A stretch of DNA of 59,788 nucleotides, counting the filler, from Basidiobolus meristosporus CBS 931.73 (Eukaryota > Fungi > Basidiobolomycota), in the NCBI GenBank assembly GCA_002104905.1. It is 4 parts of 4 records of this genome, joined end to end, with 100 filler letters (N's around TTAATTAATTAA, not from the genome) between each part and the next. Parts side by side here need not be neighbours in the genome. Positions count along the whole stretch, not along the records: positions 12,721 to 30,963 come from MCFE01001066.1; 3 more parts are not named here. One strand, given 5' to 3'. The notes under the pieces are model-generated. The model was not told the DNA's origin. It worked only from the letters and a program-made list of their open reading frames with translations, and searched no databases. A program made the position numbers and the translations under genes. Shown here in pieces: positions 12,721-30,963 of this stretch (position 1 is the first letter of the stretch; each line of letters starts with the position of its first letter).

Positions 12721-13333
12721 CAGTATGAGCGAATCATGATTTATAACCCTTCCTTGAGATTAGCGAACCACCACTCCAGTTCTAAGCCATCAATATACTT
12801 TTATATATTTCGGCAATTTATCGAAATATTCATCGAATGAAGCCCGAAGCGAAAACCAACCAAGGTTCCTCGGGGGTAAAGGCTTCTAACATCATAATGT
12901 ACAGTGATGAGCATACCACCCACATCCAATATATCTTGTTCTAGACGCATAAGTGGTGATTTGGTGATATGCCAGCCACTTTCTGGATCTTAGGGTAGCT
13001 CGACTCTAACTTTAATTTCTGATGCGGCTAGTAGAAATGTGCAGTTCTGGTTCTAACCACAAAGCTAATCTCAATACGACTCGTGCGATTGATTATAAAC
13101 GGACTACACTAGGCTTTCCGGATTTCAATTACACTTCTCAATCAATTCATTTCCACAATAACCATGTGAGATTGCGCTGTCTACTTTATTTATGATGTAA
13201 ATGTAACGTTGAACTTGGCCATAAAAGTGATGTGGAATTTATATTCTAGCTTTATGTCAGTTATGCCATGTAACAATAATGTGGTGATTATCAGGAATAT
13301 AATACAAATAAACTATGCGTGCCAAATACTACT

Positions 13334-14776
13334 CTACTGCTGGTCCACTTCAGCTGTGCGGTGACCGGTGATCTCCTCAATACTACGGCCCTTGGTCTCG
13401 GGCAAGAAGAAGAGAACCCCGATGAACCCGGCAATACAGCAGCAAACAAAGATCAAGAACACGTATCCGTGCATTGCGTCCTTCAGCGAGGGGAAGAAGA
13501 AGCCAACAATGAAGTTGCCCAGCCAGTTGAGTCCGAGTGCGCTGGAGGCCACCGTGGACACAGCTCTGGTGGGAATGAGCTCGGAGATGATCAGGAATGG
13601 AATGGGGCCCATGCCAAGTGCGAATGACACAACGAACGCAAACAATCCGAGAATCACAAGCCCCGAGTCATTGCACTCGATCCCGATGATCATCAGCACG
13701 TTGAACGCCGCCATTCCCGCAAGACTGAGGAGCACAAGGAACTTTCGTCCAACACGATCGATCAGGAGAATGGTGACAATCGTGGCTAGCAGGTTGATGG
13801 CCCCCACCCCGACCGTGAGATACTGAGCGGTCTTGTTGCCATAGATGGATGTGAAGATCGAGGTGGAGTAGTACATGATCCCGTTGATGCCACAGAGTTG
13901 CTGGATGACACACAGGAACATGCACATGAAGGCGTGCTTGCGGGTCAACGAATCCCTCATGATGAACTTGAATCCATCCATGATTGATGTCTGCTCCCCG
14001 CTGACCTTAGCTTCGGCTCTGGCATCCACCATCGTCTGGAGCTCCTTGGTGATGTCCATTCCCTTGCGAAGCTTCAGCAGTGACTTCTCGGCATCATCGA
14101 CACGGTCCTTGGAAATGTAGTAGCGTGGTGTCTCAGTGATGAATGAGAGCGTGACCAGCTGCAGGATTGCGACAGCCCCAGTCAGTGCCATACAGATACG
14201 CCATCCAGCTCTGCTCGAGAGTCCAAGCCCAGCTGCCTGGGTAACCAACTGACCAATGACGCAGGTAAGTTGGGTCATGGCTCCGTAAGCACCACGAACC
14301 CTGGTGGTAGAGACCTCGCCGATGTATGTGGGAAGAACCACTGTTCCGAACCCTGACCCAACACCGGTGAAGAAACGGCCCACAATCCACATCCCCTTGT
14401 TCTTCGAGAGACCAAGGAGCAAGGCGCCAAGGATAAAGAAAATGTTGTTGAACAGAAGCGAGTTGCGACGCCCAAACCTGGCCTGCGACCAACCGGCTGA
14501 CAGTCCGCCTATGGCTCCACCGATGGAGAAACTGCTCACCGCGAAGCCCCACAGCCAGTTGCCCATTGGGAAGCAGCTGGGGAATCCATCGACCTTTTCA
14601 TCGGGATTGGCACAGTCGATAATCGAGGATTGGATGATGTTGGTGTCGGAGGTATTCCAGCCATTGTTGAAGGAGACAAGACAAGCGATCGAGACGCACA
14701 TGACAGTGTAGAAGGAGAACCCGGCTTCAGACGAGTCGTTTGAGGATTTCACCTCTTTGGTAGAACGGCCAAACAT
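13334..14776 (-). CDS. MFS sugar porter (GLUT/hexose transporter-like), 480 aa from the likely ATG at 14776
   Basis: RFGRR, GRFFTGVG, PTYIGEVS, RGAYG, ETPRY, QQLCGINGIMYYS, IDRVGRK, SELIP, PETKG motifs; TATAAA ~55 bp before 14776, so the longer ORF start at 14938 is unlikely. Confidence 0.95.
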   Translation of the reverse strand: MFGRSTKEVKSSNDSSEAGFSFYTVMCVSIACLVSFNNGWNTSDTNIIQSSIIDCANPDEKVDGFPSCFPMGNWLWGFAVSSFSIGGAIGGLSAGWSQARFGRRNSLLFNNIFFILGALLLGLSKNKGMWIVGRFFTGVGSGFGTVVLPTYIGEVSTTRVRGAYGAMTQLTCVIGQLVTQAAGLGLSSRAGWRICMALTGAVAILQLVTLSFITETPRYYISKDRVDDAEKSLLKLRKGMDITKELQTMVDARAEAKVSGEQTSIMDGFKFIMRDSLTRKHAFMCMFLCVIQQLCGINGIMYYSTSIFTSIYGNKTAQYLTVGVGAINLLATIVTILLIDRVGRKFLVLLSLAGMAAFNVLMIIGIECNDSGLVILGLFAFVVSFALGMGPIPFLIISELIPTRAVSTVASSALGLNWLGNFIVGFFFPSLKDAMHGYVFLIFVCCCIAGFIGVLFFLPETKGRSIEEITGHRTAEVDQQ

Positions 14777-17430
14777 TGTAAAAGTGTAGTGAATTTTTAA
14801 GATGATGATAAGGCTGGCTACGGCGGGGATATTTATATAGTGGGTTCGCAGCGGATTCCAACGTTCTAGGAAATCCAATTTCCCATTTTTGGCTGGGTCA
14901 TTTGGAGGTCCATCTGGAAATAGCCTTATATGGCCCATCGACTTCCTGTAATGGATCCGCCCGAAATTTTCTTCCTAATTGATTCGAAGCGGTCTGCAGC
15001 ATGAAAATAACCTGACGCATCCACTCGTGACCAACTTGAAGTCAGAAATTACCTACGAAGTTGATAGGAGCACCCCGGATTTACTGAATCGTCTTTTTTT
15101 CCTAGCCTACTAGCAGTGTATCTCTCCATAGGTCGTGGGATCGACTGTGTAGAGTGAGCTGGAAACTGCTTCGAACAGAGTTGTTGAGAAAAATCTTCTG
15201 GAACTAGGGATATGGATATTGATTGGCCTAACCATATTGATCCCTTACCATCCCAAGCAGGTCCCAAATTTAGGCTGGCGGGATATTAGCGGGATTACCC
15301 CGACGATCTAGCTCCATGGAAATTCCCAAACATGGATGGGGATAATTTAAGTAACCCACCAATCCCCATTGGATGATCGTCTAAATGGGGGGGGGGAATC
15401 TCCTGGACGCGTTTGCGCCTCTCGGTGATCGGACTCAAGCGCAACCCCGATTCTAGATCCTACTATAAATCAGGTGCAAACCTGGTGTGCGATGGAGATG
15501 ACCCAAAGGCCGGTGGGTTTCACGTACTCATTGCATCATCAAGATCCACAAAGGTGCTCCTACTGATCTTTGGAGACCTACCTTCTGGAATCTCCATTGG
15601 CCGGGTCGGGTCGGTTCGTATGCTACCTATCGCTGCGCCCCTTCGCCACCATGATCGTTGGGACGAATTGGCACACCGCTGCCCATCCCCAGGAAATACT
15701 CTTGATCGGTGGATGACCTCTTGTACGAGGTCACGGTGGTTGACGTCACCCATCAAGGTCGAAAAGAATCCCTCCCCCTAGCAGCGGTGGGTCAGGTGAT
15801 GGTGAATTTTCGGAACGTTGCACAGCCAATATGTCTTTGTAACCCGATTTCCAGACCAGTCCCACCCAGCTCTCAAAGCCAAACCACGCAAGGTGGATTT
15901 TGGGCAGTTTCCCGGGGCCGAATGTTCCCGACAAGAGGATCTTACTGTACCGACCCACCGGCTCTGGAGGTTTGGATGGAATCTATCCGGGATCCTTTGC
16001 TAGGAGATACGTTTTGAGTTCACCTTCGAACTAAAAGGCTCGCTAGAGAACGGTGATTGACATTTCTTCGACTATGCTCTTAGCAGAAAATATTTTCCAA
16101 AAGCCCCAAGCCCTAGCCCTAGCCCTAGCCGAGATCTTCCATGGTTCGAGCATGCATTAAACTCTATGGAGATCCGTGCTGATGAAGTTCACGACTCTTC
16201 CGCCCAATAGTACAGTTGCGCAGCATTTGTCGCCCTCCAAACCCAACACCAACTCATGATCTCCGCTTAAACCCAAGCCGATTCCCACTAGCTGGTGGAC
16301 GATAGGGTTATGGTGGGGAGCCGAACGCCAACAGATCGGCAGTCAAAGGAAAGTGATCGTTGGGCGCTCGGTGAGAACATCTCCACGTGCCAGGAAGAAC
16401 CGAGAAGAAGGATACGCTTAATCCCGGTGCATCGCAGCCTACGATCTGGAAGTGGGCCCAAACATTCGGGAAACTGGGCCACGGGCACTGCGTGCGATCT
16501 CGGGTCGTTACCGTGGAGCATGTTTCAGGTGTCCGTGGGAACCTTGTCGGGATTCGGGGTATTTAAAAAAGAGCGTGGTCTTCCCACATTGATATACCGA
16601 GAGGAATTCGAGGGGGTCACATTTCCCAGGGGGCTTGGTGGCCAGGGTGCTGAGAATGCCTCGGGTAAGGTCCCAGGAGGTGGTGCGCAAATACTGGGTC
16701 TTTTGGGCACCTTGGAATCATTTGGGAACTTCCGGTATTCCCACCATTTCAATGGATTCTCGGTTGATACCGTACGAAATTTATTTCGACTCGCTACACA
16801 ACAACCTTATAAAAAAGAGGCTTCAGTCTCCAAATCTATGTTTCATCAAGGGTCAACCAATTACTTGGATCTGGAAGTCCCTTCTTACCCCAGTATACTG
16901 AGAAGCATAGAGTCGCGGGCAGCCCATACCCACCGAGAAAGGTAACCCAGCGAGTACCGGTGTTTGGCCTATTTTTGCTCCGAGGAGTTATATCTGGGGC
17001 TGTCATGGCCCAAAAGTGACACCCGGAGTGTTGTGCTATTCCGTGAACAATATTGCGATTGGCCTTTCCAGGATGTTCCCAATCAGGAATCTCAATGATG
17101 GACTAAATTAGCATTCTGGTATGGCCTTCAGATGAAATTCCACCCCAGACACTCTGCCTCTTGCACTGAAAAGCTAAAAGCGCTATTGAGGTTGGATTGT
17201 AGTTGCTTTCATTTGATCTCATCTAAGGGAATATCTATCAAGAAACATCACCACGATGTACTACCTGAAACTGCCAAGGCCTGAGCACATTTTGACCACA
17301 CTCTAGCCATAAAAATCTATGCCACTTCTTGAAGGTGTTGCAAAAACTATGCTGGTCTAGCAATCCCTATGATACAAATGTGGTCCCACAGGCAGGTGCA
17401 ATCTAAATAAGACCATGAGGGTCTTTTCAA

Positions 17431-17762
17431 TGTTGTAAGAGTCTTGGAGATATTAGAAGTGATTGGGAGGACAAGTAGATAATGTGGTTTTCACTTAATG
17501 ATTTATTGAATGTAAAAGTAGTATTTATGCTTTTACATGAGCTTCACATAACAAGCACGTAAAATAGGTTTAGGAAGATCCCAAGAACATGCGTGCAAAG
17601 TTTGGGGCTGTTTGGACAACTTATCTGATTTTCATGTTCTGGGTAAATATTCTAAGTAAATCCCAACAAGGAATTTGGCCAGTATTCTCTAGGATTTGAA
17701 AGGAATTATCTAAGTGACTAAGTTAGGTGAATATCCAGGTGGAATTACAAATTTTTACTACA
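17431..17762 (-). mobile_element. Solo LTR with TTCAA target-site duplication
   Basis: TGTTGTAA...TTACTACA; TTCAA at 17426-17430 and 17763-17767. Confidence 0.92.
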
Positions 17763-20685
17763 TTCAAGACTCCATCAGAATACTTGCAGCTTTACACATG
17801 GCCATTTTGACAATATCTTGATGGGATCCCAACAGCTTAGCCAATTATAGTTAATGTCTGATGATGCTTTAACTTCCTTTGGCCAGGCTTTCAGTGACTT
17901 AAAACCAGCTATATGGTGGTCAGCAGTCTATTACTCTCCCTATGAAAGAAAATGGTGTAAAGTCAGGCAGAATACAGTCACAGTATCTGCTGAACTCCAA
18001 GTTTCCCAACACCAACAACTTGCCATATCTCAGGTTTTAGCTGTTGAGAAGACAAGTGGGCATTTTTTACAGGAGTGAACTGGGCCAGCCAGAATTCATA
18101 CCAAATTTGGTAATCAGCTGCCCACTACTTCTACCAGAAATTGCAACTGAATATTTGAAGGAAAAACACCAGCAGTATACCAGCTGAAAAACAGATGGAT
18201 CCATTGCTCCAGTAAGGCAAATTAGTACTAATTGCAGTCCTGCACTGGGAAACAGAGTTTGGCCCTACATTTGATTTTCCTTCAGGGCCTGATACTCCTC
18301 AGTCAAAGCAGATCTCTAAAACTTTGTCTGAGAGCTAATTATGGCCTTTTTACAGTCTATGGCTCATCAATATGAACTAAATAGGTTTAGGCTAAGTTTG
18401 TACCCTCATTAATATAGTGATTTAGGCTATTTCAGGTCCAGTTGAATCTCCTGGCTTGCAATACTTGAATGATCACTTCTAGGATATTCCTAGGCGCTAT
18501 TCAGGCTGAACCATAGTTGTAGAGTCCTCTGGAGTGAAGAAACATTGATTGTTTTGCTTGGATTCAACTCCAACCAATAATTGACTGTAGATCAGAAATG
18601 TCATCATTTGATAATATTTTCTGGAATATCTTGATATTCATCAAGAAATACATACCAGGACTTGATTGACTTCTTATCTTTGGTATTGTAGAGACTGTAT
18701 GCCTTACTCTTACTGCAGTAGCTCAATAATAATCATTTTACACTTTTTGGCTTAAAACTGACCAATTTCCAGGCAGTTTTTCAGCATATGCTGTGCACCC
18801 AAATATTGTGAGAAGTTATGCACCTTTTCTTTATCTATGCCATGCTTCAAATGAAGTAGAATCACAAAGTTTTCTGTTAGAACTTCAATTCTTAGGGTGT
18901 ATAATTGAGACAACTGATTCTGCCAAAAATTTGTAGTATAATTTTTGATCATGGATCATAGGTCTTGCCATAGTGCTTATTGATCTGTTTCCCCCTTCTG
19001 CCACTCCATGTGACTGCAGGAAGTATGGTACAGCAGTCTCTTGGCTTATCCCATGAATTTTGCATAAGTGAATGAAGAGTTTTGAGGTTTATATTCTACC
19101 ATTGTTGGAGCATATTTTCTTTAGTTATTCACTAGTTTCTCTCACCATTATGACTTTGAGCTCCCTCTGCTTAAACACAGTTTCTGCCTTTCTTTCTATG
19201 AAGTAGGCCCATGTTTATCTTGTATAATTGTCAGTGAAAGTAATTGACTGCATGATCCTGCCCGTGGATAAACTTTGCATAGATCCACACAAATCTGATT
19301 GATTTAAATCCAATTTCTTTTAGTATCAGTTACCCCAGAACTCTGGAATAGTTATCTGGCTTGCTTTCCATATTTGCAGGCTTCACAGTGCTCTAAATTA
19401 CCTGGGGGATCAGTTTTTACTCTAAAAATTAGCTGCTCATTTATCATCTTATGCAGATATTCAAAGTTGATGTGTCCAAGTCCCCTGTGCTAGAGCATTG
19501 GTGTTTCTTCATTCAAGTTGCTTATATTGGCTTCCAGATTTGATGGAACATAAATCCACTGGCATGTATTCTTATCTCTGATACCCAAGGCAATAACAGC
19601 ACCATTTTGATCAGTGATCCCGCATCCAGAAATGTCTAAACTGAAACTGAGTTCTTCTACTATAGTCTTGCTTACACACGGTAGGTTCTTAGCTATTTCT
19701 GGTACATCAAGTAATTCTTTGATGGTAAGTATATCCATTCCTTCACTGCTTCTGAGACTCACTTGAATAGTTTCTTCTCCAATTGCATCAAGTGCTCTAT
19801 TTTCACATATGAAAACCTTCTTGATTGGAATTTCTGGATATTGGGTAAAAAGCACTTTTTAGTATGCAAAGGGATAAGATGCTCTAGAGTCAATATATCA
19901 TGTCTGAGAATCCTTGTTTATGGTTATATTCAGTGCAGATATGAATAGTCTACTCATAGTTGTAGCAGTATTCCCATATTCATGTTTGTCTGCTGATTCT
20001 CTCTTTTTGAAACACCAGTCTGATAGATGTCCTTTCCATTTGCAGTAGTTGCAAAATAGGTTGCTGTTGCCTTTAAAGGGTCTTTAGTACCCCCTTTATA
20101 GGTTATTATGCTTATTAAAGTGGTTTTTTCTTTCTTTTAATTGGTACTTGATTTTCTTAATTCTTCATTGAGGAGCCTTCCATATGCCTAGTTTAAGGTC
20201 CAGTCTTCAGTTTTGCACTCCACAGCTGATACAAGCCCCTAAAGCTTGTCTGTCAGGCTATTCAGCAGGGTAACTATCACATTGTCTTCAGTTGTTGGTA
20301 CACCCACTGATTCCAACTCATCAACAAACAGGGTAATTTTGCTGATTGGATTTTTCATATCTATTTGTGGCAGCATCTTGGTAGTAAAGAATTTTTGTCC
20401 AAGATAGATCTTCTTGGCAGCTGTACATGGCTGGTAGCTGCCTTCTAGTGCTTTCCAGGCATTCTTTACTGCTTTTGTTCTTGATCATTGAATTAGCAAT
20501 TTGTTGTTTACATTGAGGTATATGCAGTTAAAGCACTTTGTTCATCCTGCTGGTACTGTAAGGCTACTTCCCAGCATCTTTAGGAGGGCATCCTTCTCCC
20601 ATGACAATATCCCAAAGGCCTCTTTCCTGTATCAGCATCTTCAGCTTCACCTTCCAGACTTGGTAACTAGATCCATCCTACTTTT

Positions 20686-21035
20686 TGTTGTAAGAGTCTT
20701 GGAGATATTGGAAGTGATTTGGAGAACAAGTAGATTATGTGGTTTTCACTTAATGATTTATTGAATGTAAAAGTAGTATTTATACTTTTACATGGTCTTG
20801 GCATTACAAACACGTAGAATAGGTTAAGGAAGGTCCCAAGAACATGTGTGCAAAGTTTGGGGCTGTTTGGACAACTTTGAGAATTTTCATGTTCTGGGTA
20901 CCTGGTATTTTGGTGAAAATATTCTAAGTAAATCCCAACAAGGAATTTGGTCAGTATTCTCTAGGATTTGAAGATGATGATCTAAGTGACTAAGTTAGGT
21001 GAATATTTAGGTGGAAAATACGAATTTTTACAACA
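20686..21035 (-). mobile_element. Young solo LTR inserted into the gag of the older element, TSD CTTTT
   Basis: CTTTT at 20681-20685 and 21036-21040; gag sequence continues on both sides. Confidence 0.93.
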
Positions 21036-21098
21036 CTTTTTACATAGGGAATAATCCCAGTAGTAGCCATGGCAAGCATTGCAGAGAGTGACAGCTTA

Positions 21099-21110
21099 GG
21101 GCTCATAACC
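21099..21110 (-). other. Primer-binding site GGTTATGAGCCC (half-tRNA-iMet type)
   Basis: Directly abuts the 5' LTR end (TCTTACAACA|GGTTATGAGCCC on -); matches the Drosophila copia-type GGTTATGGGCCC PBS. Confidence 0.85.
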
Positions 21111-21729
21111 TGTTGTAAGAGTTTTGGACATAATAGAAGTGAAATGGAGAACAAGTATTGTATGTTGTTTTCACTTGGAGCTTTATTGAACGTAAAGTAG
21201 TGTTCATTCTTTAACATAATTGTGAAATACTAAGCAAGCTGAATAGATCTAGGGAGCTCCCAAGAGCATTTGTACAATGCTTGGGGCTGTTTGGACAACT
21301 TTTAGAATTTTCATGCTCTGGGTACCTGATCTTTTGGTGAAGATATTTCAGTTAAATCCCAGCAGAAAATTTGGTTGAAGTACCATAATATTTGTAGATA
21401 ATAATATAAGTGATTAAGTTAGGCAAGTATAGAGGTGGATTTACAAACTTTTGCAACATTCTGTGGACTTTTCTTAATTTTTTTTCTAGGGGTAGGTGTG
21501 TCAACAATGCTTACAGAGTGTTATGTTGGAGTTTCCTTAGGCATATTTGTCTTTGGCTTTACTAGTAGCATTTTATTGAAATATGTCAAAGCAACAAATG
21601 AATGGAGGTATGCTCATAGTGCCAGAAGGAGCTGAAAGCTACAACAGGTACTAGTGGGTTAATATTTGATTATTATTATAAGTGTAAAGGTCCGGTTATT
21701 AGTTTGCAAGATGATGGCTATGTCTGCAG

Positions 21730-22070
21730 CAGTAAGTTTTGTATGTACACCAAAATATTCAATTGAATTGTTCACTTAGATCATAGCCCACAGATTTTAA
21801 AGTTTTTTGCTCAGATTCCTTATGGTGATATACTGATACATCCATCCAAAATATCTGAAACTTGAGACATAAGTAAGCTTCAAGTTGTCCAAAATCCCTG
21901 TAACTTTGCACTCATGGTCTTGGGACCTTCCTAAGCATATTCTGTAATTTGTTTGCCAAGGACATTTAAGAGTATAATTACCACTTTTACATGCTATAAA
22001 TCCGTAGGTGAAAACCATAAAATCTACTAGCTCACTCAATCACTGCAAATACCTCCAAGCTCTTACCATA
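21730..22070 (+). mobile_element. Highly diverged LTR of the same family, opposite orientation
   Basis: ttcacttagatcat, caagttgtccaaa, actttgcac, tcttgggaccttcct, gtgaaaacca, ctccaagctcttacc align to the reverse complement of the LTR; ends approximate. Confidence 0.7.
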
Positions 22071-22874
22071 TATCCCCAAGGCCGTTTCAGTACCTTGTGA
22101 CTCTTCCGAGTGTAAAATCACTGCCACTTTTGTATTTGAGAAAGCAGAAAAATACTTCAAATACTGGCTGAGATAGAAAATTGAGTTCAGTGATTTGAAA
22201 CAGACAAGAATCATAACTGAAGTAATTTTTGCAGCTGCAAATACTACTGATTATGACTCTGGAACTTGAGAGATCATTAACCATAATATCGATGATCCTA
22301 TATGCACATTCCCAACAATACCACACAGCAAAAATTGTGGTTGATTCCTTACAGTTCAATCCAAACTGTAGCGGTACCACGCCTGGTTTGCCCCTTATTG
22401 GAGACGAAAAATCTCCGGTCTGTGCGACCACTGGGATTTGCAGGAGTCAGTGGAGATCTGGGCGCGGAGGACTCCAATTGCTCTCCGCCCGTGGTTGGTC
22501 GATTGACTAAGCACCACTTTCGGGTGATTGAATGTAGCACATTATGCCAGAATCATACGAGCTTCATAGCGTGGCAAGTAGATTTGGTAAACGAGGTTTA
22601 AGTCAGTAGAGTGACACCGCAGAATAGTTCTATCAATTGGACGCTATGAGAGATTCTCCATTATGTGTGCACAATGAGCGCATATCAGATGGATACAATC
22701 AACAATGAATCCCTTCACATTCATGTCACACAATGTCGGCCATCTGAAGATAGGAAGAAACTTCTGCCAGCGTCTTGATTGTTGGATGCGCTTACCATGA
22801 TGATGGGTAAAACCTACTTGTTGGAGTTCTGCGTTATATATTTTACTGAGCAGGACAAGTGTTGTTTGCTTGGC

Positions 22875-23312
22875 ATGAAATTTCTTTCAGTTTCCATATC
22901 AGTTGCGCTGGTTACTCAGATAATTGGTACACCCATAGACGAATGCTACGGGTGGTCAGGGGTCTCAGTCGAGCCTGCTGCTGACCAAAAAGCAACTTTA
23001 TCATCAAACGATCTGGTTGCCCTCAAATGGACCGCTTCAGGCTCAGGAATCACCAACATCCGCGAGGTAGATCTGTTCAGCGCCAAGGATCACCAGTTCT
23101 TGCATACCCAGTACCGCAGTTATCCTGGCATTAGTGCAGCTGAGGGACAACTTTCATTCATCCTCACTGTGCCTCTCTGCTTGCAACGGGACGGTAGATA
23201 CTATCTTGAGGTGTATTCCAGCACCGCCGGGCAAGACATGAACTGTCACGCACAAACCCAGGTCTTCGAGTTGACCCCGGACCCGAACGGAAACTTCACT
23301 GGGTGTCCTTAG
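22875..23312 (+). CDS. Small secreted protein, 145 aa, 4 Cys, probable beta-sandwich
   Basis: Signal peptide MKFLSVSISVALVTQIIG; TATA-like ttatatattt ~40 bp upstream; W-T-A...I-x-x-V-D-L...Y-Y-L pattern loosely like Kre9/Knh1-N-type domains (family call weak). Confidence 0.75.
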   Translation: MKFLSVSISVALVTQIIGTPIDECYGWSGVSVEPAADQKATLSSNDLVALKWTASGSGITNIREVDLFSAKDHQFLHTQYRSYPGISAAEGQLSFILTVPLCLQRDGRYYLEVYSSTAGQDMNCHAQTQVFELTPDPNGNFTGCP

Positions 23313-24056
23313 CCCAGAGAATCGTGTTCAGCTTCATCTTCAATAAACTCATTATATGGTAGAAATGGCGCGTCAGTTGGGTAGCTACTCATGCACAAAA
23401 TTCGCTGTATAACCCTTGTTTATTACAATTAAGCATCACTTACATCGTGATGGAGTGCATCTATTCCAGACCGGTGCGCTGAACCAGATGGCGTACATTA
23501 TCCGGTTAGGGATAACAGCAATTGGCAGGCACGGAATCAGGAAAGTGATACAGCATTCAATCTCAGGAAAGCATTCAGCAACCCTCTTTCGGCCGGAGTG
23601 AATAACCGATTGGAAAGTCCTTCTAAGGCCTTGGGTGTGTCACTTCGAATGGAGCGCTCAGCTGGGCACGAATGTGGCCGGCTGCTGGTGATCGTTTAAT
23701 CAGAGTTGTTCAACAACGGAGTGATTGCGAGAGAATAAGGAAAAAATTCAAATGAATATGACACCTCAGCCAATCACCACAAGACCCGATTGCCGTTTAT
23801 GTTCGTTCACTTCATTTCGAAATCCCGGGTGTCTTGACACAAGCGAAATTAAGTGGGAAAATTTTCACGCAATGCCCACTTCGAAGAGCGATCTTCTTTT
23901 CGAAGCGGCGTGCGACCTTGGGCGTTCTCTCTGACGTCAACTCAGGCACCATGCTGGCTGTATAAATGCCTCCGTTTTCCGACAAGGCCCATTGTATATT
24001 TTCCTCGCTAGCCGAGAATCCAATCATCATCTATTTAGCCGGTTGCATCATTCGAC

Positions 24057-24850
24057 ATGATCGGTGTTCGCGTTCTCACTATCGCCCTGGCCGCCCTTCT
24101 TGCCTTTGTTACCTTGAGTGAGGCTCACTCGTGGGTCGACTGCCTGGACTGGCGCTTCAAGGACTCCAAGAAGAAGAGCTTTGACGATAATGCTGGTGAA
24201 TGTCGCGGATACGCCCGCCGTTTCCCCGTCAAGTACGGGAAGAATGGTCAAGTAACTCCCAAGAAGCCCTTCGGAACATTGGATAGTGACTGGCCGAATC
24301 GCCACTACAAACAATCTGAGCTGCACCCTGGTAGGTCCTCCAGCGCCACGTAGCTGTCGTTCAATATTCTTAACTCCCTTCCTTTATTAAAGATAACTGG
24401 CCTGCATGCTCAACCGGCAAGCGCTACAAGAACGGCGAGCACGAGGAGGTCGGATCCGACGAAACCCGTGCCTCCCCCGTCAGTAAAGCTTATGGTCAGA
24501 ACAAGTGGGGCCGTATGACCATCAAGAAGGTTGGTCAACAACTTTGTGTGCGCTGGCCAGCCAAGACTCATCAGCATGAGCCCAACAACATCGTGTATAT
24601 CAACATGCCACCAAAGCCCACTTCCAAGGATCCCACCCAGAAGGAGATGAACAAATGGACCATTGCCAAGTTGAACTACGGTAACTGCTTCTCTGGTGGC
24701 TCCGACAAGGCTCGTTGTGGGGGCTGCTTCAAGATTCCCAAGGATCGCAAGCCTGGAGAGTATCTCATTCAATGGAGATGGAAGTTGAATGGCAGCGATG
24801 GCAAGCCCGAGTGGTACACCTCCTGTGCTGATGTGAAGATTAACAAATGA
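24057..24850 (+). CDS. Secreted LPMO-like / histidine-brace candidate, 243 aa; exons 24057-24330, 24393-24850
   Basis: Signal peptide ending SEA|HSW; 62-nt GTAGGT..CTTAAC..AAG intron restores one frame; WPAKTH; C-terminal GEYLIQWRW...EWYTSCADVKI; 8 Cys; TATAAA at 23961. Confidence 0.85.
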
Positions 24851-26566
24851 ACGTGAAGCCCTGTGTGTCACCAAAGACACCTGAATGCTCAACCCAGCAT
24901 TAAATATAATCCAAATAAATTGATCCATATTTACTGCAGCAAAGGACTCGGTCATTTATTAAGAGATCAATTGGTTACTTAAATTAGAGCGATGTCGGTG
25001 ATGGGGGCGCATCTTCCAGGCAACTTTGGATCAGTGTTTGGCTCACACATCAATCCTTTGTCACAGAGGTCGATGTCGATCTTGTCGCTTGTGCATGAGG
25101 TATTGATCTAGCAACGATATTGGCAATCAGCAGACTTACTTCCGATTGATTGGAACTAGAAACCCTCCCTTACCTGGCCTTTACGAATGCATACACCAAC
25201 ATCGCTTCCTGGCCCCTTAACACACTCGAGGTTTGATGAGCAAATGGTGGAGCCTCCGCAAGCTGTACCTATCTGTGATGTGTCGTTAGGGCCAGCATGG
25301 CTGGTGCCGTTTTATTTTTCAGGACCTACCTCGCCTGGCCTTCTACAGGTTCCTCTTCCGTGTGACTTCTTCACACACTCTAATCCTGGAATACTATTTG
25401 GATTTAGTTGCAGCGAAAACGACTAGCCGGCAAGGTGGATGGAAATTACCATTCCAGTTGGCGTGGCCCGCCGCACGGCAAGCTTCTACCTCTGGTGAAG
25501 GCCCGCTGGTTTACAATGATTCGTTTATACGTGTGGTGTAGACCATTGATCTAGATGTACCAACCCTGGTGAACTTCTTGCAAATACCATAGCTATACTC
25601 GGATTTATCCTCCACCATGCAAGTTTCGTCTTGGCCACTATGCAGTAAGTCCAATGGTGAACAACAGCCAGCATTCTAAAGAGTCGAGCAAAATTACCAT
25701 CGTAGAAGCTCTTCCCCGCCACACACTACAATCCCGAACCACTAAGTTATTTGATTCCAGGAAAATCCAATCCAAGGTCACTCAACCTTTTCCCTCAGTT
25801 TTGGTGGCGCTTTGACAGGTGAAACCCTGTTCGTTTCCGGTCCTTAGACAATCGAGCCCAAGCCTGCAGGTGTAAACACTGCTTCTTGATGGATCACAGA
25901 TGCTTCCTAGCTGAAAGATACCAGTAAGTAAACCTGGATCATCAGGCACTGGCCTCTAGATTCACCTCTCCAAATGTCAAGCCTGCCTTGGCACACGTTC
26001 CCGTAGCACCTGGGAGCTTCGAGGTAACTATGCAAAGTTCATTCGCCCCGCTTCGGCTCATTGTTAGTATCCGGGAGGCTGTCCAAAGAGCAGGCTACTT
26101 TTACCATGGAATGTTGCTCAAACCACCACATACTAGGTTACAAATGCTCTTTAGTCAACATGTGGTCAACCAAACGGATAGGACGTACGTACGTGTGCAG
26201 ACCACTGAACCGCCACTTCCCAGAAGCATCAACACGTGCCATCTCATCTTACTTGGAGGGGAGGGATTGCCGGTGTGAGGGCGGAGGGGATATTTATTCC
26301 TTGCCTTCAAAACGGCCGTTCAAACAACGCATCATCTCGGATGGCTTTGGTGGGGTTGATTGGAGGATTTTATTTGTGGCAGTTTTGAGATATGATAGGT
26401 GTGTTTCAACAGAGGGGGATTCGATTACCTAAAAGACAATTAAGCGAGTTTGTACACCAAATCAAAAAATCGTTCTTCATTAGTTGGAACGAGAACGCGT
26501 TGCTGTGGTATAGACTCCTATAGCGTGGCGTAAAACTACGATGATGCTATATTCTCTCCCATGGAT

Positions 26567-27646
26567 TTACTGCTCCTCTTTCTCTTCAGTGGAGTGGGTG
26601 TAATCGAATGGATCCCCGAGGGCGACCTTGATGAGAAGCTTTCTGCCCTCCAAGGTGAGCTCCTTCTTCTCCTCCAACACCTTCTTTTGATCCTCTTCTT
26701 TCTCAAACTCTACGAAACCAAAGCCTTTGGAGCGGCCGGTTTTGGAGGTGACGATCAGAGATCTGGTGACCTTGGTGTCTGGGAACAATCCCTCCAAGGC
26801 GGAGGTCTCTAGGTTGTAGGGTAGGTTGCCAATAAACAAGCTCTGGGTGGAGGGCGCTCCGAGGGGGGCCTTTGGCTTGCCTCCGAATCTACGACCGCGT
26901 CTAGCTCTAGGTCCTCTCTCGTCCTCATCAACCGATTGCTCGGATAAATCAAGGTTGCCTAGCTCCTCACTGACTTGTGAAACGCCATTCTCGGCATCGA
27001 CATCGGCGCCGGCTTCGTTGGTGGCGTCGCGTTTGTTGGAGAATCGGCGGGGCGCCTTGGAGCTCTATAACCAAAGTGTTAGCCAGGTCTCCATGCCCAC
27101 TCATACATATGGTCCGGTAGTTACCAATACAACTTCGTCTTCGTTCGCGCCACGTCCTCTACCTCTACCTGCTCCACGTCCACGCTTGGCTCTTCCGCGT
27201 CCACGAGCTCCCTTTTTACCCTCACCAGAGGCCTCGTTTTCCTCACCTTCGTTGACGTGGTTCTCATCCTTGCTAGGTTCAGGTTCACGTTTGATGGGGC
27301 GGGCGAGTTCTACCTTGAGCACTCTACCGTCCAACTCGGACTTGTCCTTTTCACTGACGGCCTTTTGGGCATCATCTAATTTTTCGAAGCTAATGAAGCC
27401 ATAGCCTAGAGAGCGTTTACCGCGGGTAAGAATGGTGGCTTCGCTGCTATAGGGAGAAGGGAAGGGCGTGAGATCAGCTGGTGGCTATGGGGGTGAAAGT
27501 GGGCTAGCCAAGAGCGCTTACATGGGGCCGAAACTATCGAAAGCGGCCTTCAGCTCTTCTTGGGTGGTCTGGAAGGGCAAGTTGCCGATGAACACTTTGG
27601 TACTTTGCTCGTTGTTGAGCACTTCTGGTTGACTCTCTTCGGACAT
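26567..27646 (-). CDS. Two-RRM, RGG-linker RNA-binding protein (Sbp1-like architecture), ~314 aa; exons 27646-27522, 27446-27125, 27064-26567
   Basis: RNP2 VFIGNL / LFIGNL and RNP1 LGYGFISF / KGFGFVEF; RGRGRAKRGRGAGRGRGRG linker; 75- and 60-nt introns keep frame (second donor slightly ambiguous). Confidence 0.9.
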
Positions 27647-28181
27647 GGTGAAGTGAACTTTACACTAAGGGGGCTGAGATTACTAACGTTTGAACGGATA
27701 TTTCCAAAATACCTCTCCTGCCGACTCGTCACTTTCCAATTTACCTTACCGCACTCCTATTGACCCTGGCCTGGTCTACGTACGCATCCCACGCGATCTC
27801 CCATATTTCCCCTGGCATTCGTAATCGAAGAGTGGCTTTCGAATAACATCCATATCGATGGCCAATCCGATATTTTCCCCGTCCAAAAGTGGATCCCTGA
27901 TTTCGTCATCCACTCGATGGGAAGGCGCATAATTAACCCCCAATTTACCCATAATAAACCACGTTGATTGATTGGGATTCGGTGGAAAATTCCCCTATCC
28001 CTCACTAGTCCGCATAATTGTCACGATATTCTCTGGAGACCAATCGTCTTCAATCAAACGGATGTGTTTATTTTGGGCTTAGTTAATCCACCGTGCTAGA
28101 CATTTTAGTCATTTACTGGATGCCAAGTGGGTTTACAATAGCATAAGCAGAATAAATATTATAGGTTGCAGTGCGGATAAA

Positions 28182-29468
28182 CTAAATCATGGTTTCAGCT
28201 AGACTCTTTTGGCCCATCTTGACAAATCTGGGATAGGTGTATCGGAACATCAAGGTGCGGACCTCGCTGAATGCCCTGTCAAAGATGTCCAGGCGGATGT
28301 CGTTGGACTGGAACCTACGCCGGATCTCTCGCACCGCTGATGCTTCGAGGTTCAGCTCGAACTCTGAGTCAGCCGAGATGAAGGTGTTGTAGATGCTGTT
28401 GATCTCGAGTATCACCCAGGTGGGAAGTTCCGCTGCACCCGAGAGTTCTCGTGTCTTGTGGCGAAGCTTCTGGATGCGCTCGAAGAACAGAGCATTCTCC
28501 ACACTGAAGTCACGGAGGGAGAACCGCTTGAACACCTCGAACTGCTGCGGATCCTCGACCATCGACTCGAATGAGGCCATGCTGGAGCTTCTGCTGCCTC
28601 CAGCACCGCCTCGGAGTGCATTGACGGCTGGGAGAACAATGCTGAAGCAGTGGCTGATCATCAAGGCGACCACACTCCAGTGGGCAGCTGGGAAGATCTT
28701 GATCACATCTCTGAGTGATGGCAGTGCAGCGAATAGGATGTACAGGATGAAGGCAATCACACCCAGGGTGAAGTCGGCCATGAGCTCACGCTTGATTCCG
28801 TAGGCATCATCGACACCACGGAGCCAGGTGATGAAGAGAGGGCACAGCACGAACACATAAAAGGCGGAGGTGAGGTAGACAGGGATGAACTCCCAGCCAA
28901 CCAGGCAGTTCCCCAAGGCCATGGTCGGGGTGATCTGGAACTTGGTGGTGAACGCTTGGACCAGCAGGGTGAGGGCCATCTGGAAGGACAACGCACCGAT
29001 GATCAGTCGGACAATGTAGTTTGTGGTGAACTTCTCGCGGTGCTTGTAGTACCAGTTCTCATCCAGGACCATGGTAGGTGCGGAGGTGATGGTGGGTTTC
29101 TCTGAGCCGAGATCCACATAGTGATCCGCGCTGGAGCCAGCCACTAGTTTGGCCTGGCTGAAATGGTACAGGAAGGCAAGTCGCATGAACCGACCAGCGA
29201 CCGAGGTGAGCCACAGCGGCATACCAATGGACGAGACCCAGATGTTGACAAAGCAGGGGAAGCTGTCGTAGGTCGGCTCTCGCCCGAGATAGAGAGTGGT
29301 GACCAGCGAGTTACCGATCACCATGAACACCGAGAGGGTGATACTGCGGTAGCGAATGGCCGGCGACTGATACTGGGAGATGAACAGGAACGTGGTGGAG
29401 ATGAGGAAGAAGTTCCACCCAATGGTTACCGGGTAATAGAACTTCTGGGATGTTGTCCAGTTATCCAT
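28182..29468 (-). CDS. 7TM receptor-like protein fused to an RGS domain, 428 aa
   Basis: Seven hydrophobic segments, then RGS motifs FKRFSLRDFSVENALFFERI, IYNTFI...ELNL, IFDRAFSEV..LM...YPRF; TATATAA upstream supports the ATG at 29468. Confidence 0.9.
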   Translation of the reverse strand: MDNWTTSQKFYYPVTIGWNFFLISTTFLFISQYQSPAIRYRSITLSVFMVIGNSLVTTLYLGREPTYDSFPCFVNIWVSSIGMPLWLTSVAGRFMRLAFLYHFSQAKLVAGSSADHYVDLGSEKPTITSAPTMVLDENWYYKHREKFTTNYIVRLIIGALSFQMALTLLVQAFTTKFQITPTMALGNCLVGWEFIPVYLTSAFYVFVLCPLFITWLRGVDDAYGIKRELMADFTLGVIAFILYILFAALPSLRDVIKIFPAAHWSVVALMISHCFSIVLPAVNALRGGAGGSRSSSMASFESMVEDPQQFEVFKRFSLRDFSVENALFFERIQKLRHKTRELSGAAELPTWVILEINSIYNTFISADSEFELNLEASAVREIRRRFQSNDIRLDIFDRAFSEVRTLMFRYTYPRFVKMGQKSLAETMI

Positions 29469-30221
29469 TAGTGAGCCAGATATTTTGGTGTATAGGAGGA
29501 TGTAATGTATTTGTGATATTGCAGACATTCCGGTCATCGAGCTTTCTTATATAGTACGTTAGATTGGAGTATGGAGTTCACTGCAGGAGCCATCGTGAAC
29601 GCATAGTATTACTTCGTTCGGCAGGGCACCCTCACAGAAGCTGGGGTCGTTGTACACTGATTTAATCGGGTGGTGGAGTACCATTCTAACTCGGATTGAG
29701 GAAATTACGACCACTTTGAAGGCAAATGTATCACTTGTCCGCGCTTTAGTACATATGATCAAATCAGTCGAATTTGTTTTATCTTGGAATGAATCTGTAA
29801 GAAATGATCCGTTACGCGCAACTGCCATGATTCGATTTTCAACTGGGAATTCGCTACCCCGCAATTATTTCGACTCTTTTCTGCACTCTACGGAGCGGGT
29901 CTTAATTTCCCTGAACACATAGATCAGATGACTTCGAATTTGGGAATTAACCTACGCACCACACATGCAACTCTGCGTGGAGCAGATAATATAGGCGTCG
30001 TGCAGCCCAACGCACTTCGGAGTAGCCACCGAGGCCTAGTAGGGAGAACTCCGCTTTGCTCTACGTCTGTTTTCTTTGGCTTTGAATGTACACTTCACCG
30101 GTGCGCATTATCTACCCTGCATTGGTTGGTATCTCCAGCTCGATCTGCTTGGTATAAATTCATTTTCGATGCTCAGACTGTTCGTACACAACTACCGCAG
30201 TCAACTAGTTTTCGATAAGCA

Positions 30222-30963
30222 ATGGACAGCTGGACTACATCCCAGAAATTCTATTACCCGGTAACCATTGGGTGGAACTTCTTCCTCATCTCCACCACGT
30301 TCCTGTTCATCTCCCAGTATCAGTCGCCGGCCATTCGCTACCGCAGCATCACCCTATCGGTGTTCATGGTGATCGGTAACTCGCTGGTCACCACTCTCTA
30401 TCTCGGGCGAGAGCCGACCTACAACAGCTTCCCCTGCTTTGTCAACATCTGGGTCTCGTCCATTGGTATGCCGCTGTGGCTCACCTCGGTCGCTGGTCGG
30501 TTCATGCGACTTGCCTTCCTGTACCACTTCAGCCAGGCCAAACTAGTGGCTGGCTCCAGCGCGGATCACTATGTGGATCTCGGCTCAGAGAAACCCACCA
30601 TCACCTCCGCACCTACCATGGTCCTGGATGAGAACTGGTACTACAAGCACCGCGAGAAGTTCACCACAAACTACATTGTCCGACTGATCATCGGTGCGTT
30701 GTCCTTCCAGATGGCCCTCACCCTGCTGGTCCAAGCGTTCACACCAAGTTCCAGATCACCCCGACCATGGCCTTGGGGAACTGCCTGGTTGGCTGGGAGT
30801 TCATCCCTGTCTACCTCACCTCCGCCTTCTATGTGTTCGTGCTGTGCCCTCTGTTCATCACCTGGCTCCGTGGTGTCGATGATGCCTACGGAATCAAGCG
30901 TGAGCTCATGGCCGACTTCACCCTGGGTGTGATTGCCTTCATCCTGTACATCCTATTCGCTGC
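30222..30963 (+). CDS. Second 7TM-RGS copy (divergent orientation), 1-bp frameshift at ~30742, runs into gap
   Basis: Near-identical reverse complement of 28730-29468; TTC-AC-ACC vs TTC-ACC-ACC. Confidence 0.85.

Follow-up and report, generated by a model that had tools for sequence, protein, structure and literature searches.

New families of lytic polysaccharide monooxygenases (LPMOs) have repeatedly given new substrates and new biology: starch for AA13, xylan-coated cellulose for AA14, occurrence in animals for AA15, pectin in oomycete infection for AA17 and copper uptake for X325. The gene described here lies at positions 24057 to 24850 of a 59,788-nucleotide stretch of DNA (the window) from the fungus Basidiobolus meristosporus CBS 931.73 (assembly GCA_002104905.1), in the piece that comes from MCFE01001066.1 (positions 12,721 to 30,963). 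We consider it probable that this gene encodes a secreted single-domain protein of the LPMO fold, with an AA11-like Tyr-Glu copper site and an oxidative, polysaccharide-cleaving activity. The parts of this reading differ in strength: a copper histidine brace is likely, while the prediction that the protein is a polysaccharide-oxidising LPMO stands at about even. Its closest solved counterparts by sequence are the AA11 enzymes, in which the combination of an axial Tyr with a second-sphere Glu has been called unique, and Glu139 was found to be crucial for the productive use of H2O2 (PMC12186267).

The predicted pre-protein begins with a signal peptide of 23 residues (codons 1-23, 24057-24125, plus strand; MIGVRVLTIALAALLAFVTLSEA, ending in SEA), behind which His24 (codon 24126..24128) becomes residue 1 of a mature protein of about 220 residues and the predicted N-terminal His of the brace. 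Its recognisable motifs are SEA/HSWVDC, WPAKTH and GEYLIQWRW ... EWYTSCADVKI. An earlier note on this stretch had already placed the mature N-terminus at the His of SEA/HSWVDC, and the family bears this out. The assignment follows the -3/-1 rule: among 143 relatives with a complete N-terminus, in which the His stands at median position 25, the residue at -1 is Ala, Ser or Gly in 139, and that at -3 is small or aliphatic in 140, a family-wide context that indicates signal-peptidase cleavage directly ahead of His. The mature exon parts contain 29 Lys and have an isoelectric point (pI) of 9.4-9.6 each, in line with the Lys-rich character remarked on before, and there is one N-x-S sequon (N224). 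Neither a carbohydrate-binding module (CBM), whose absence had been claimed, nor any other extra domain was found in a Pfam scan of the exons or in the model of the orthologue introduced below; the protein ends two residues past the last strand. Exon 2 likewise contains no hydrophobic C-terminal tail.

The exons were searched separately, and the orthologue of Basidiobolus ranarum (P0001), equal in length and with 84% identity to exon 1 and 95% to exon 2, stood in as a proxy in the family, fold and profile work. An AlphaFold2 model built from a 46-sequence family alignment with this orthologue as lead reached a predicted local distance difference test score (pLDDT) of 87.2 and a predicted template-modelling score (pTM) of 0.84, and the predicted fold is the immunoglobulin/fibronectin-like beta-sandwich of LPMOs. 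A Foldseek comparison with the PDB agreed with the LPMO-type fold anticipated from the sequence, as the best 50 matches were all LPMOs or LPMO-like proteins except for two chains of the copper protein PmoD. Among 30 language-model neighbours, 17 were LPMO_10-labelled clusters (the one listed being mainly Ascomycota), and a BIM1-like cluster was present as well.

The structural alignments also position the predicted copper ligands. Nearly all of them, made with about 50 LPMOs, start at model residue 24, which is matched to the His at the target's mature N-terminus (numbered 1, or 28 in CBP21, 35 in CelS2 and 26 in AfAA11B in entry numbering). At the other end, 10 residues separate Tyr233 from the last aligned residue (243), and the axial Phe or Tyr of CelS2, CBP21, TdAA15A and AfAA11B lies equally far from the ends of their aligned ranges, at 229, 197, 194 and 176, respectively. 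We take the axial residues of the first three to be Phe219, Phe187 and Phe184. The axial residue of AfAA11B is Tyr141 (entry residue 166), and that of ScAA10C is F185 in mature numbering (PMC12186267). The His of WPAKTH (His151, codon 24569..24571), which the earlier note had put forward as the second ligand, was placed by folding the C-terminal half of the orthologue alone (residues 141-243; pLDDT 91.7). The first residue of this fragment superposes on CelS2 133, CBP21 103, TdAA15A 80, AfAA11B entry residue 75 and SliLPMO10E 109, that is, 10-11 residues ahead of the second brace His in these five LPMOs of AA10, AA11 and AA15 (His144, His114, His91, His61 [entry 86] and His120, respectively). 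His151 follows ten residues after this start and so lies at most one residue away from the second brace His of all five. The local pattern, a strand leading into W-P-A-K-x-H, parallels the AA10 strand exit that bears the second His.

A broad profile of 91 family members, searched against the PDB, matched AA11 structures only (E 4.8e-4 to 9.5e-4, over 35-39 residues). The alignment follows G-x-Y-x-x-x-W-x-W ... E-x-Y-x-x-C and sets Glu231 and Tyr233 of the segment Glu231-Trp232-Tyr233 (24809..24817; Glu231 24809-24811, Tyr233 24815-24817) on Glu139 and Tyr141 of AfAA11B (HMMER). Profile and structure thus both support the C-terminal strand match and the possible axial Tyr that had been read from the sequence. 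The kinship proposed there, to LPMOs of the AA10/AA11/AA15/AA16 type, holds in that the protein is LPMO-like, and can be narrowed: the closest family by sequence is AA11, through the shared E-x-Y-x-x-C of the Tyr-Glu site. By alignment and conservation, the protein has a mature His1, a His in the position of the second brace ligand, and an axial Tyr/Phe with a second-sphere Glu/Gln.

Conservation was assessed in 141 of the first 198 proteins fetched, namely those with at least 200 residues and H-S-[WFYHL]-x-x-C within the first 80. Of these, 140 keep His151 and 136 keep Tyr233, and 110 have Glu or Gln at position 231. Trp219 (135/141) and Trp221 (138/141) are similarly stable, and each of six Cys positions is kept in at least 133. 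The alternative candidate for the second ligand, His83 in the motif RHYxQ, was discarded because it is kept in only 69 of the 141 relatives and stands 150 residues from the axial Tyr, beyond the range seen in LPMOs.

The family extends far outside Basidiobolus. A word search with exon 2 returned 49 relatives from Basidiobolus and Mortierellomycotina, named "hypothetical", "secreted" or, automatically, "Chitin-binding type-4 domain-containing", and an exhaustive profile search gave 423 cluster representatives at E<=1e-3. The wider relatives come from dictyostelids (Heterostelium, Acytostelium, Tieghemostelium, Cavenderia), the ichthyosporean Chromosphaera, and marine protist transcriptomes and metagenomes. 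In the Basidiobolus/Mortierella clade the proteins are short, basic (median domain pI 9.1) and without a tether, and they are multi-copy and often in tandem. The distant tier is acidic (median pI 5.3) and usually carries long tails rich in Ser, Thr and Pro, with a transmembrane-like or glycosylphosphatidylinositol (GPI)-like hydrophobic segment in 28 of 66 tails. The earlier description of the protein as uncharacterised is correct in that the family has no characterised member. It is not unnoticed, as annotation pipelines have already flagged the LPMO resemblance, and public names in UniRef and Atlas include "Chitin-binding type-4 domain" and "Lytic polysaccharide monooxygenase".

Two further observations concern the relatives. 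Paralogues with consecutive locus tags, such as K493DRAFT_332704/332705/332706 in B. meristosporus and BGX28_006494/006495 in Mortierella sp., as well as other pairs, suggest tandem duplication and lineage-specific expansion. Three protist proteins (P0115, P0120 and P0128) combine an N-terminal LPMO-like domain, a Ser/Thr/Pro-rich spacer, a transmembrane-like segment and a C-terminal WW domain. Judged from their sequences, they would wire an extracellular histidine-brace domain to a cytoplasmic protein-interaction module; we know of no described LPMO with such an architecture.

That the window holds a real gene is evident from its structure and from comparison with B. ranarum. Two open reading frames (ORFs) in different frames, 24057-24353 (98 residues) and 24515-24850 (111 residues), lie on the plus strand, and the proposal that a single intron joins them proved right. 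Exon 1 (24057..24330) starts with the ATG at 24057 and comprises codons 1-91 and the first base of the Asp92 codon. A 62-nucleotide GT..AG intron of phase 1 follows (24331..24392; GTAGGT donor, CTTAAC branch-like site, AG acceptor), and exon 2 (24393..24850) supplies the last two bases of Asp92, codons 93-243 and the stop codon TGA (24848-24850). The exons rejoin through the split codon G/AT (Asp) into a reading frame of 243 codons. The intron is supported by the window sequence and by B. ranarum, in which the annotated orthologue (K7432_012774, 243 residues) aligns to the window without gaps in tblastn, residues 1-91 with 24057-24329 at 84% identity and residues 92-241 with exon 2 at 95%, and an intron of 74 nucleotides occupies the identical site. 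Nucleotide identity between the two species is 74% in exon 1, 83% in exon 2, 49% in the intron and 41-42% in the flanks. Synonymous sites are saturated, and the ratio of nonsynonymous to synonymous differences (pN/pS) comes to 0.11 in exon 1 and 0.045 in exon 2, the exon differences being overwhelmingly synonymous. The colinear orthologue, the shared intron site and the mostly synonymous differences indicate a real gene on which strong purifying selection acts, carried by a Basidiobolus species other than the sequenced B. ranarum.

In the mechanism we propose, the 243-residue pre-protein would lose its 23-residue signal peptide and be released as an untethered, basic (pI ~9.5) secreted protein of about 220 residues. 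One copper ion would be held in a histidine brace by His151 and by His24, the latter through both its side chain and its free amino group, with Tyr233 in the axial position. Glu231, beside the copper, may be a second-sphere residue with the role of positioning H2O2 or O2, in the Tyr-Glu arrangement of the chitin-active AA11 LPMOs. Once reduced, the enzyme would cleave a polysaccharide oxidatively. Copper binding, redox catalysis and substrate are all inferred. The first guess for the substrate, chitin or another polymer of fungal or arthropod walls, is suggested by the likeness to AA11 and by the hosts' ecology; for chitin itself, we make it with low confidence. An anionic glycan is a plausible alternative because of the positive surface charge. 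Chitosan, which had also been suggested, would be an unlikely partner on electrostatic grounds for a protein with a pI of about 9.5.

Several points weigh against this reading. A histidine brace does not predict LPMO activity, and brace proteins devoid of activity on polysaccharides are known, X325 among them (PMC13353379), and the protein has no CBM. The equivalence of the ligands rests on alignment end-points and conservation. Similarity to solved LPMOs is modest, with TM-scores of 0.3-0.45 and sequence identity of 9-18%. Many distant relatives are surface-tethered and come from organisms that are not biomass degraders. Immediately ahead of the second His, the window protein and its B. ranarum orthologue have Thr (Thr150, codon 24566-24568), and 128 of the 141 relatives have Asn. 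A conserved Asn also occurs in AA11 second spheres (PMC12186267), and by comparison with it Thr150 may tune the copper site. Finally, no paper on the window family or on DUF7492 was found in the literature, and no biochemical data for any member.

The chief rival view is that the protein is an LPMO-like copper protein that does not cleave polysaccharides and serves instead in copper acquisition or handling, H2O2 production or cell-surface redox signalling, as proposed for X325/Bim1-type proteins and AA16 "oxidoreductases". We regard this as rather unlikely. The missing CBM and the limited predictive value of the brace would fit it, as would the spread of the superfamily through dictyostelids, an ichthyosporean and marine protists, whose members mostly carry Ser/Thr/Pro-rich tails and, in the proportion given above, membrane- or GPI-like segments that recall GPI-anchored X325; a BIM1-like cluster also appears among the language-model neighbours. 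However, proteins of the Basidiobolus/Mortierella clade, the window protein included, are short and soluble and lack a tether; the window protein has no GPI-anchored architecture, and neither the window exons nor the B. ranarum orthologue match PF20238 (BIM1-like). Moreover, most members keep the catalytic-type Glu/Gln-x-Tyr pair. A non-catalytic carbohydrate-binding or effector protein built on the LPMO scaffold, like the Magnaporthe NIS1 effector, seems very improbable: the match to NIS1 spans only about half of the domain (110-112 residues), and very distant eukaryotes keep His24, His151 and Tyr233 almost without exception, which would not be expected were the metal site dispensable.

A different objection accepts the enzyme but not its novelty, and holds that the protein is a divergent AA11 member already covered by CAZy/dbCAN, with no separate family needed. 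In its favour, AoAA11 (4MAH/4MAI), AfAA11A (7P3U) and AfAA11B (9EXJ/9HDG) are the sole solved structures that match significantly by sequence (E~5e-4), sharing with the window protein G-x-Y-x-x-x-W-x-W ... E-x-Y-x-x-C-A on the last two strands and, with it, the axial Tyr and second-sphere Glu described as unique to AA11 (PMC12186267). The LPMO_10-labelled language-model neighbours point the same way, and dbCAN "AA11" has been reported to be enriched in the secretomes of Mortierellomycotina and Zoopagomycota (PMC9391592). Nevertheless, the similarity is confined to the last ~37 residues and does not extend over the AA11 catalytic domain: the close-family profile found no significant match among solved proteins in the PDB (E 0.3-0.9 for AA11), and the broad profile yielded the short match only. 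Pfam LPMO_10 (PF03067, gathering threshold 23 bits) matches neither the window exons nor the B. ranarum orthologue and is missed by 87 of 91 relatives, with a best E of 0.0014 in the other four. His1 and His2 are separated by 127 residues, against 60 in AfAA11B, and the N-terminus H-S-W-x-x-C, with its invariant Cys at +5, the Cys pattern and the basic domain set the window protein apart. By structure no family stands out, the Z scores to AA11 (9.8-10.0) being no higher than that to AA10 (11.4). Simple membership of AA11 is therefore improbable, and a secreted LPMO-fold enzyme with an AA11-like copper site remains our preferred reading.

It is possible, and we suggest it tentatively, that the window protein represents a distinct pan-eukaryotic, unclassified LPMO family of the form H-S-W-x-x-C ... 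W-P-A-K-N-H ... E-x-Y-T-S-C, with DUF7492 as a relative. Such a family would form a second Tyr-Glu lineage besides AA11, mostly tethered in protists, with a multi-copy secreted enzyme, soluble and basic, in Basidiobolus and Mortierellomycotina. Should its members cleave polysaccharides, a new CAZy AA family would be merited, and LPMOs would gain roles in the wall and matrix biology of amoebae, ichthyosporeans and early fungi. The family has a complete predicted histidine brace with an AA11-type Tyr-Glu pair, yet the Pfam LPMO models miss it. The lineages that have it are ones whose LPMO biology is essentially unexplored: an animal-gut or opportunistic zygomycete, Mortierellaceae, dictyostelids, an ichthyosporean and marine protists. 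The family also provides a second natural setting for the claim that AA11 owes its unusual redox properties to the Tyr-Glu arrangement.

The surroundings of the gene can be described briefly. A TATAAA box (23961..23966, plus strand), 91-96 nucleotides upstream of the ATG, is a candidate core promoter, and an AATAAA (24914..24919, plus strand), 64 nucleotides past the stop codon, is a candidate polyadenylation signal; both were read directly in the DNA. The orthologous B. ranarum intron (L001:2590-2665) holds an (AT)n microsatellite, which the window intron lacks and which explains the 12-nucleotide difference in length. The window piece contains a single copy of the family, as judged by tblastn with the orthologue, and its neighbouring genes are unrelated. 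A 534-residue ORF on the minus strand (13334-14938) is a sugar transporter gene with a full Sugar_tr/MFS match (E 4.5e-105) and no evident link to the LPMO-like gene. Another minus-strand ORF (28182-29537, 451 residues) ends in a regulator of G-protein signalling (RGS) domain (E 4e-13). Between the genes, a 121-residue ORF (19490-19855, minus strand) with a sub-threshold match to Pol_BBD (Pol polyprotein beta-barrel) is probably a decayed retroelement fragment.

The separation from known families was judged by Pfam models, PDB profile matches and structure comparison; on this basis, it is plausible that the window family stands outside the established LPMO families, although CAZy-style models may already class its members as distant AA11. 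The distinctness from canonical families claimed in the earlier note is upheld in that the protein belongs to neither the AA9 nor the LPMO_10 Pfam family and has no significant full-length similarity to solved LPMOs. For AA9 (PF03443), exon 2 reaches 20.2 bits and the B. ranarum orthologue 21.5, below the gathering threshold of 27.8. AA18, cited to Santos et al. 2025 for the metagenomic enzyme CelOCE, was taken as unrelated. The best Pfam model is DUF7492 (PF24320), a mainly ascomycete and uncharacterised family, with 29.5 bits for the orthologue and 23.4 for window exon 2 alone against a cut-off of 27. The orthologue covers profile positions 183-238 of 265. The model is touched by 34 of 91 relatives; 50 relatives scanned singly meet its C-terminal part only (positions ~174-259), and one member of alignment A2 scores E 2.9e-14. 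Among ESM Atlas predicted structures, DUF7492 is also the nearest other family (TM 0.65, 193 residues aligned), followed by AA10 and AA9 at 0.53-0.55. The window family borders DUF7492.

With the AA10 and AA15 enzymes CelS2 (4OY7), CBP21 (2BEM) and TdAA15A (5MSZ), the window protein shares His1, a second His after a W-x-x-x-x-His strand exit and an equivalently placed axial aromatic residue, at 12-14% identity and with no significant hidden Markov model match. It differs from them in having Tyr rather than Phe as the axial residue and a Glu in the position used by AA9 and AA11 (E-x-Y). With the X325/Bim1-like proteins (LaX325, 6IBH), it has in common the LPMO-like fold, the N-terminal His and the lack of a CBM, and X325 is surface-tethered, as are the distant relatives of the window protein. 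Set beside these systems, it is a new, uncharacterised variant inside the known LPMO superfamily, and not a new kind of system.
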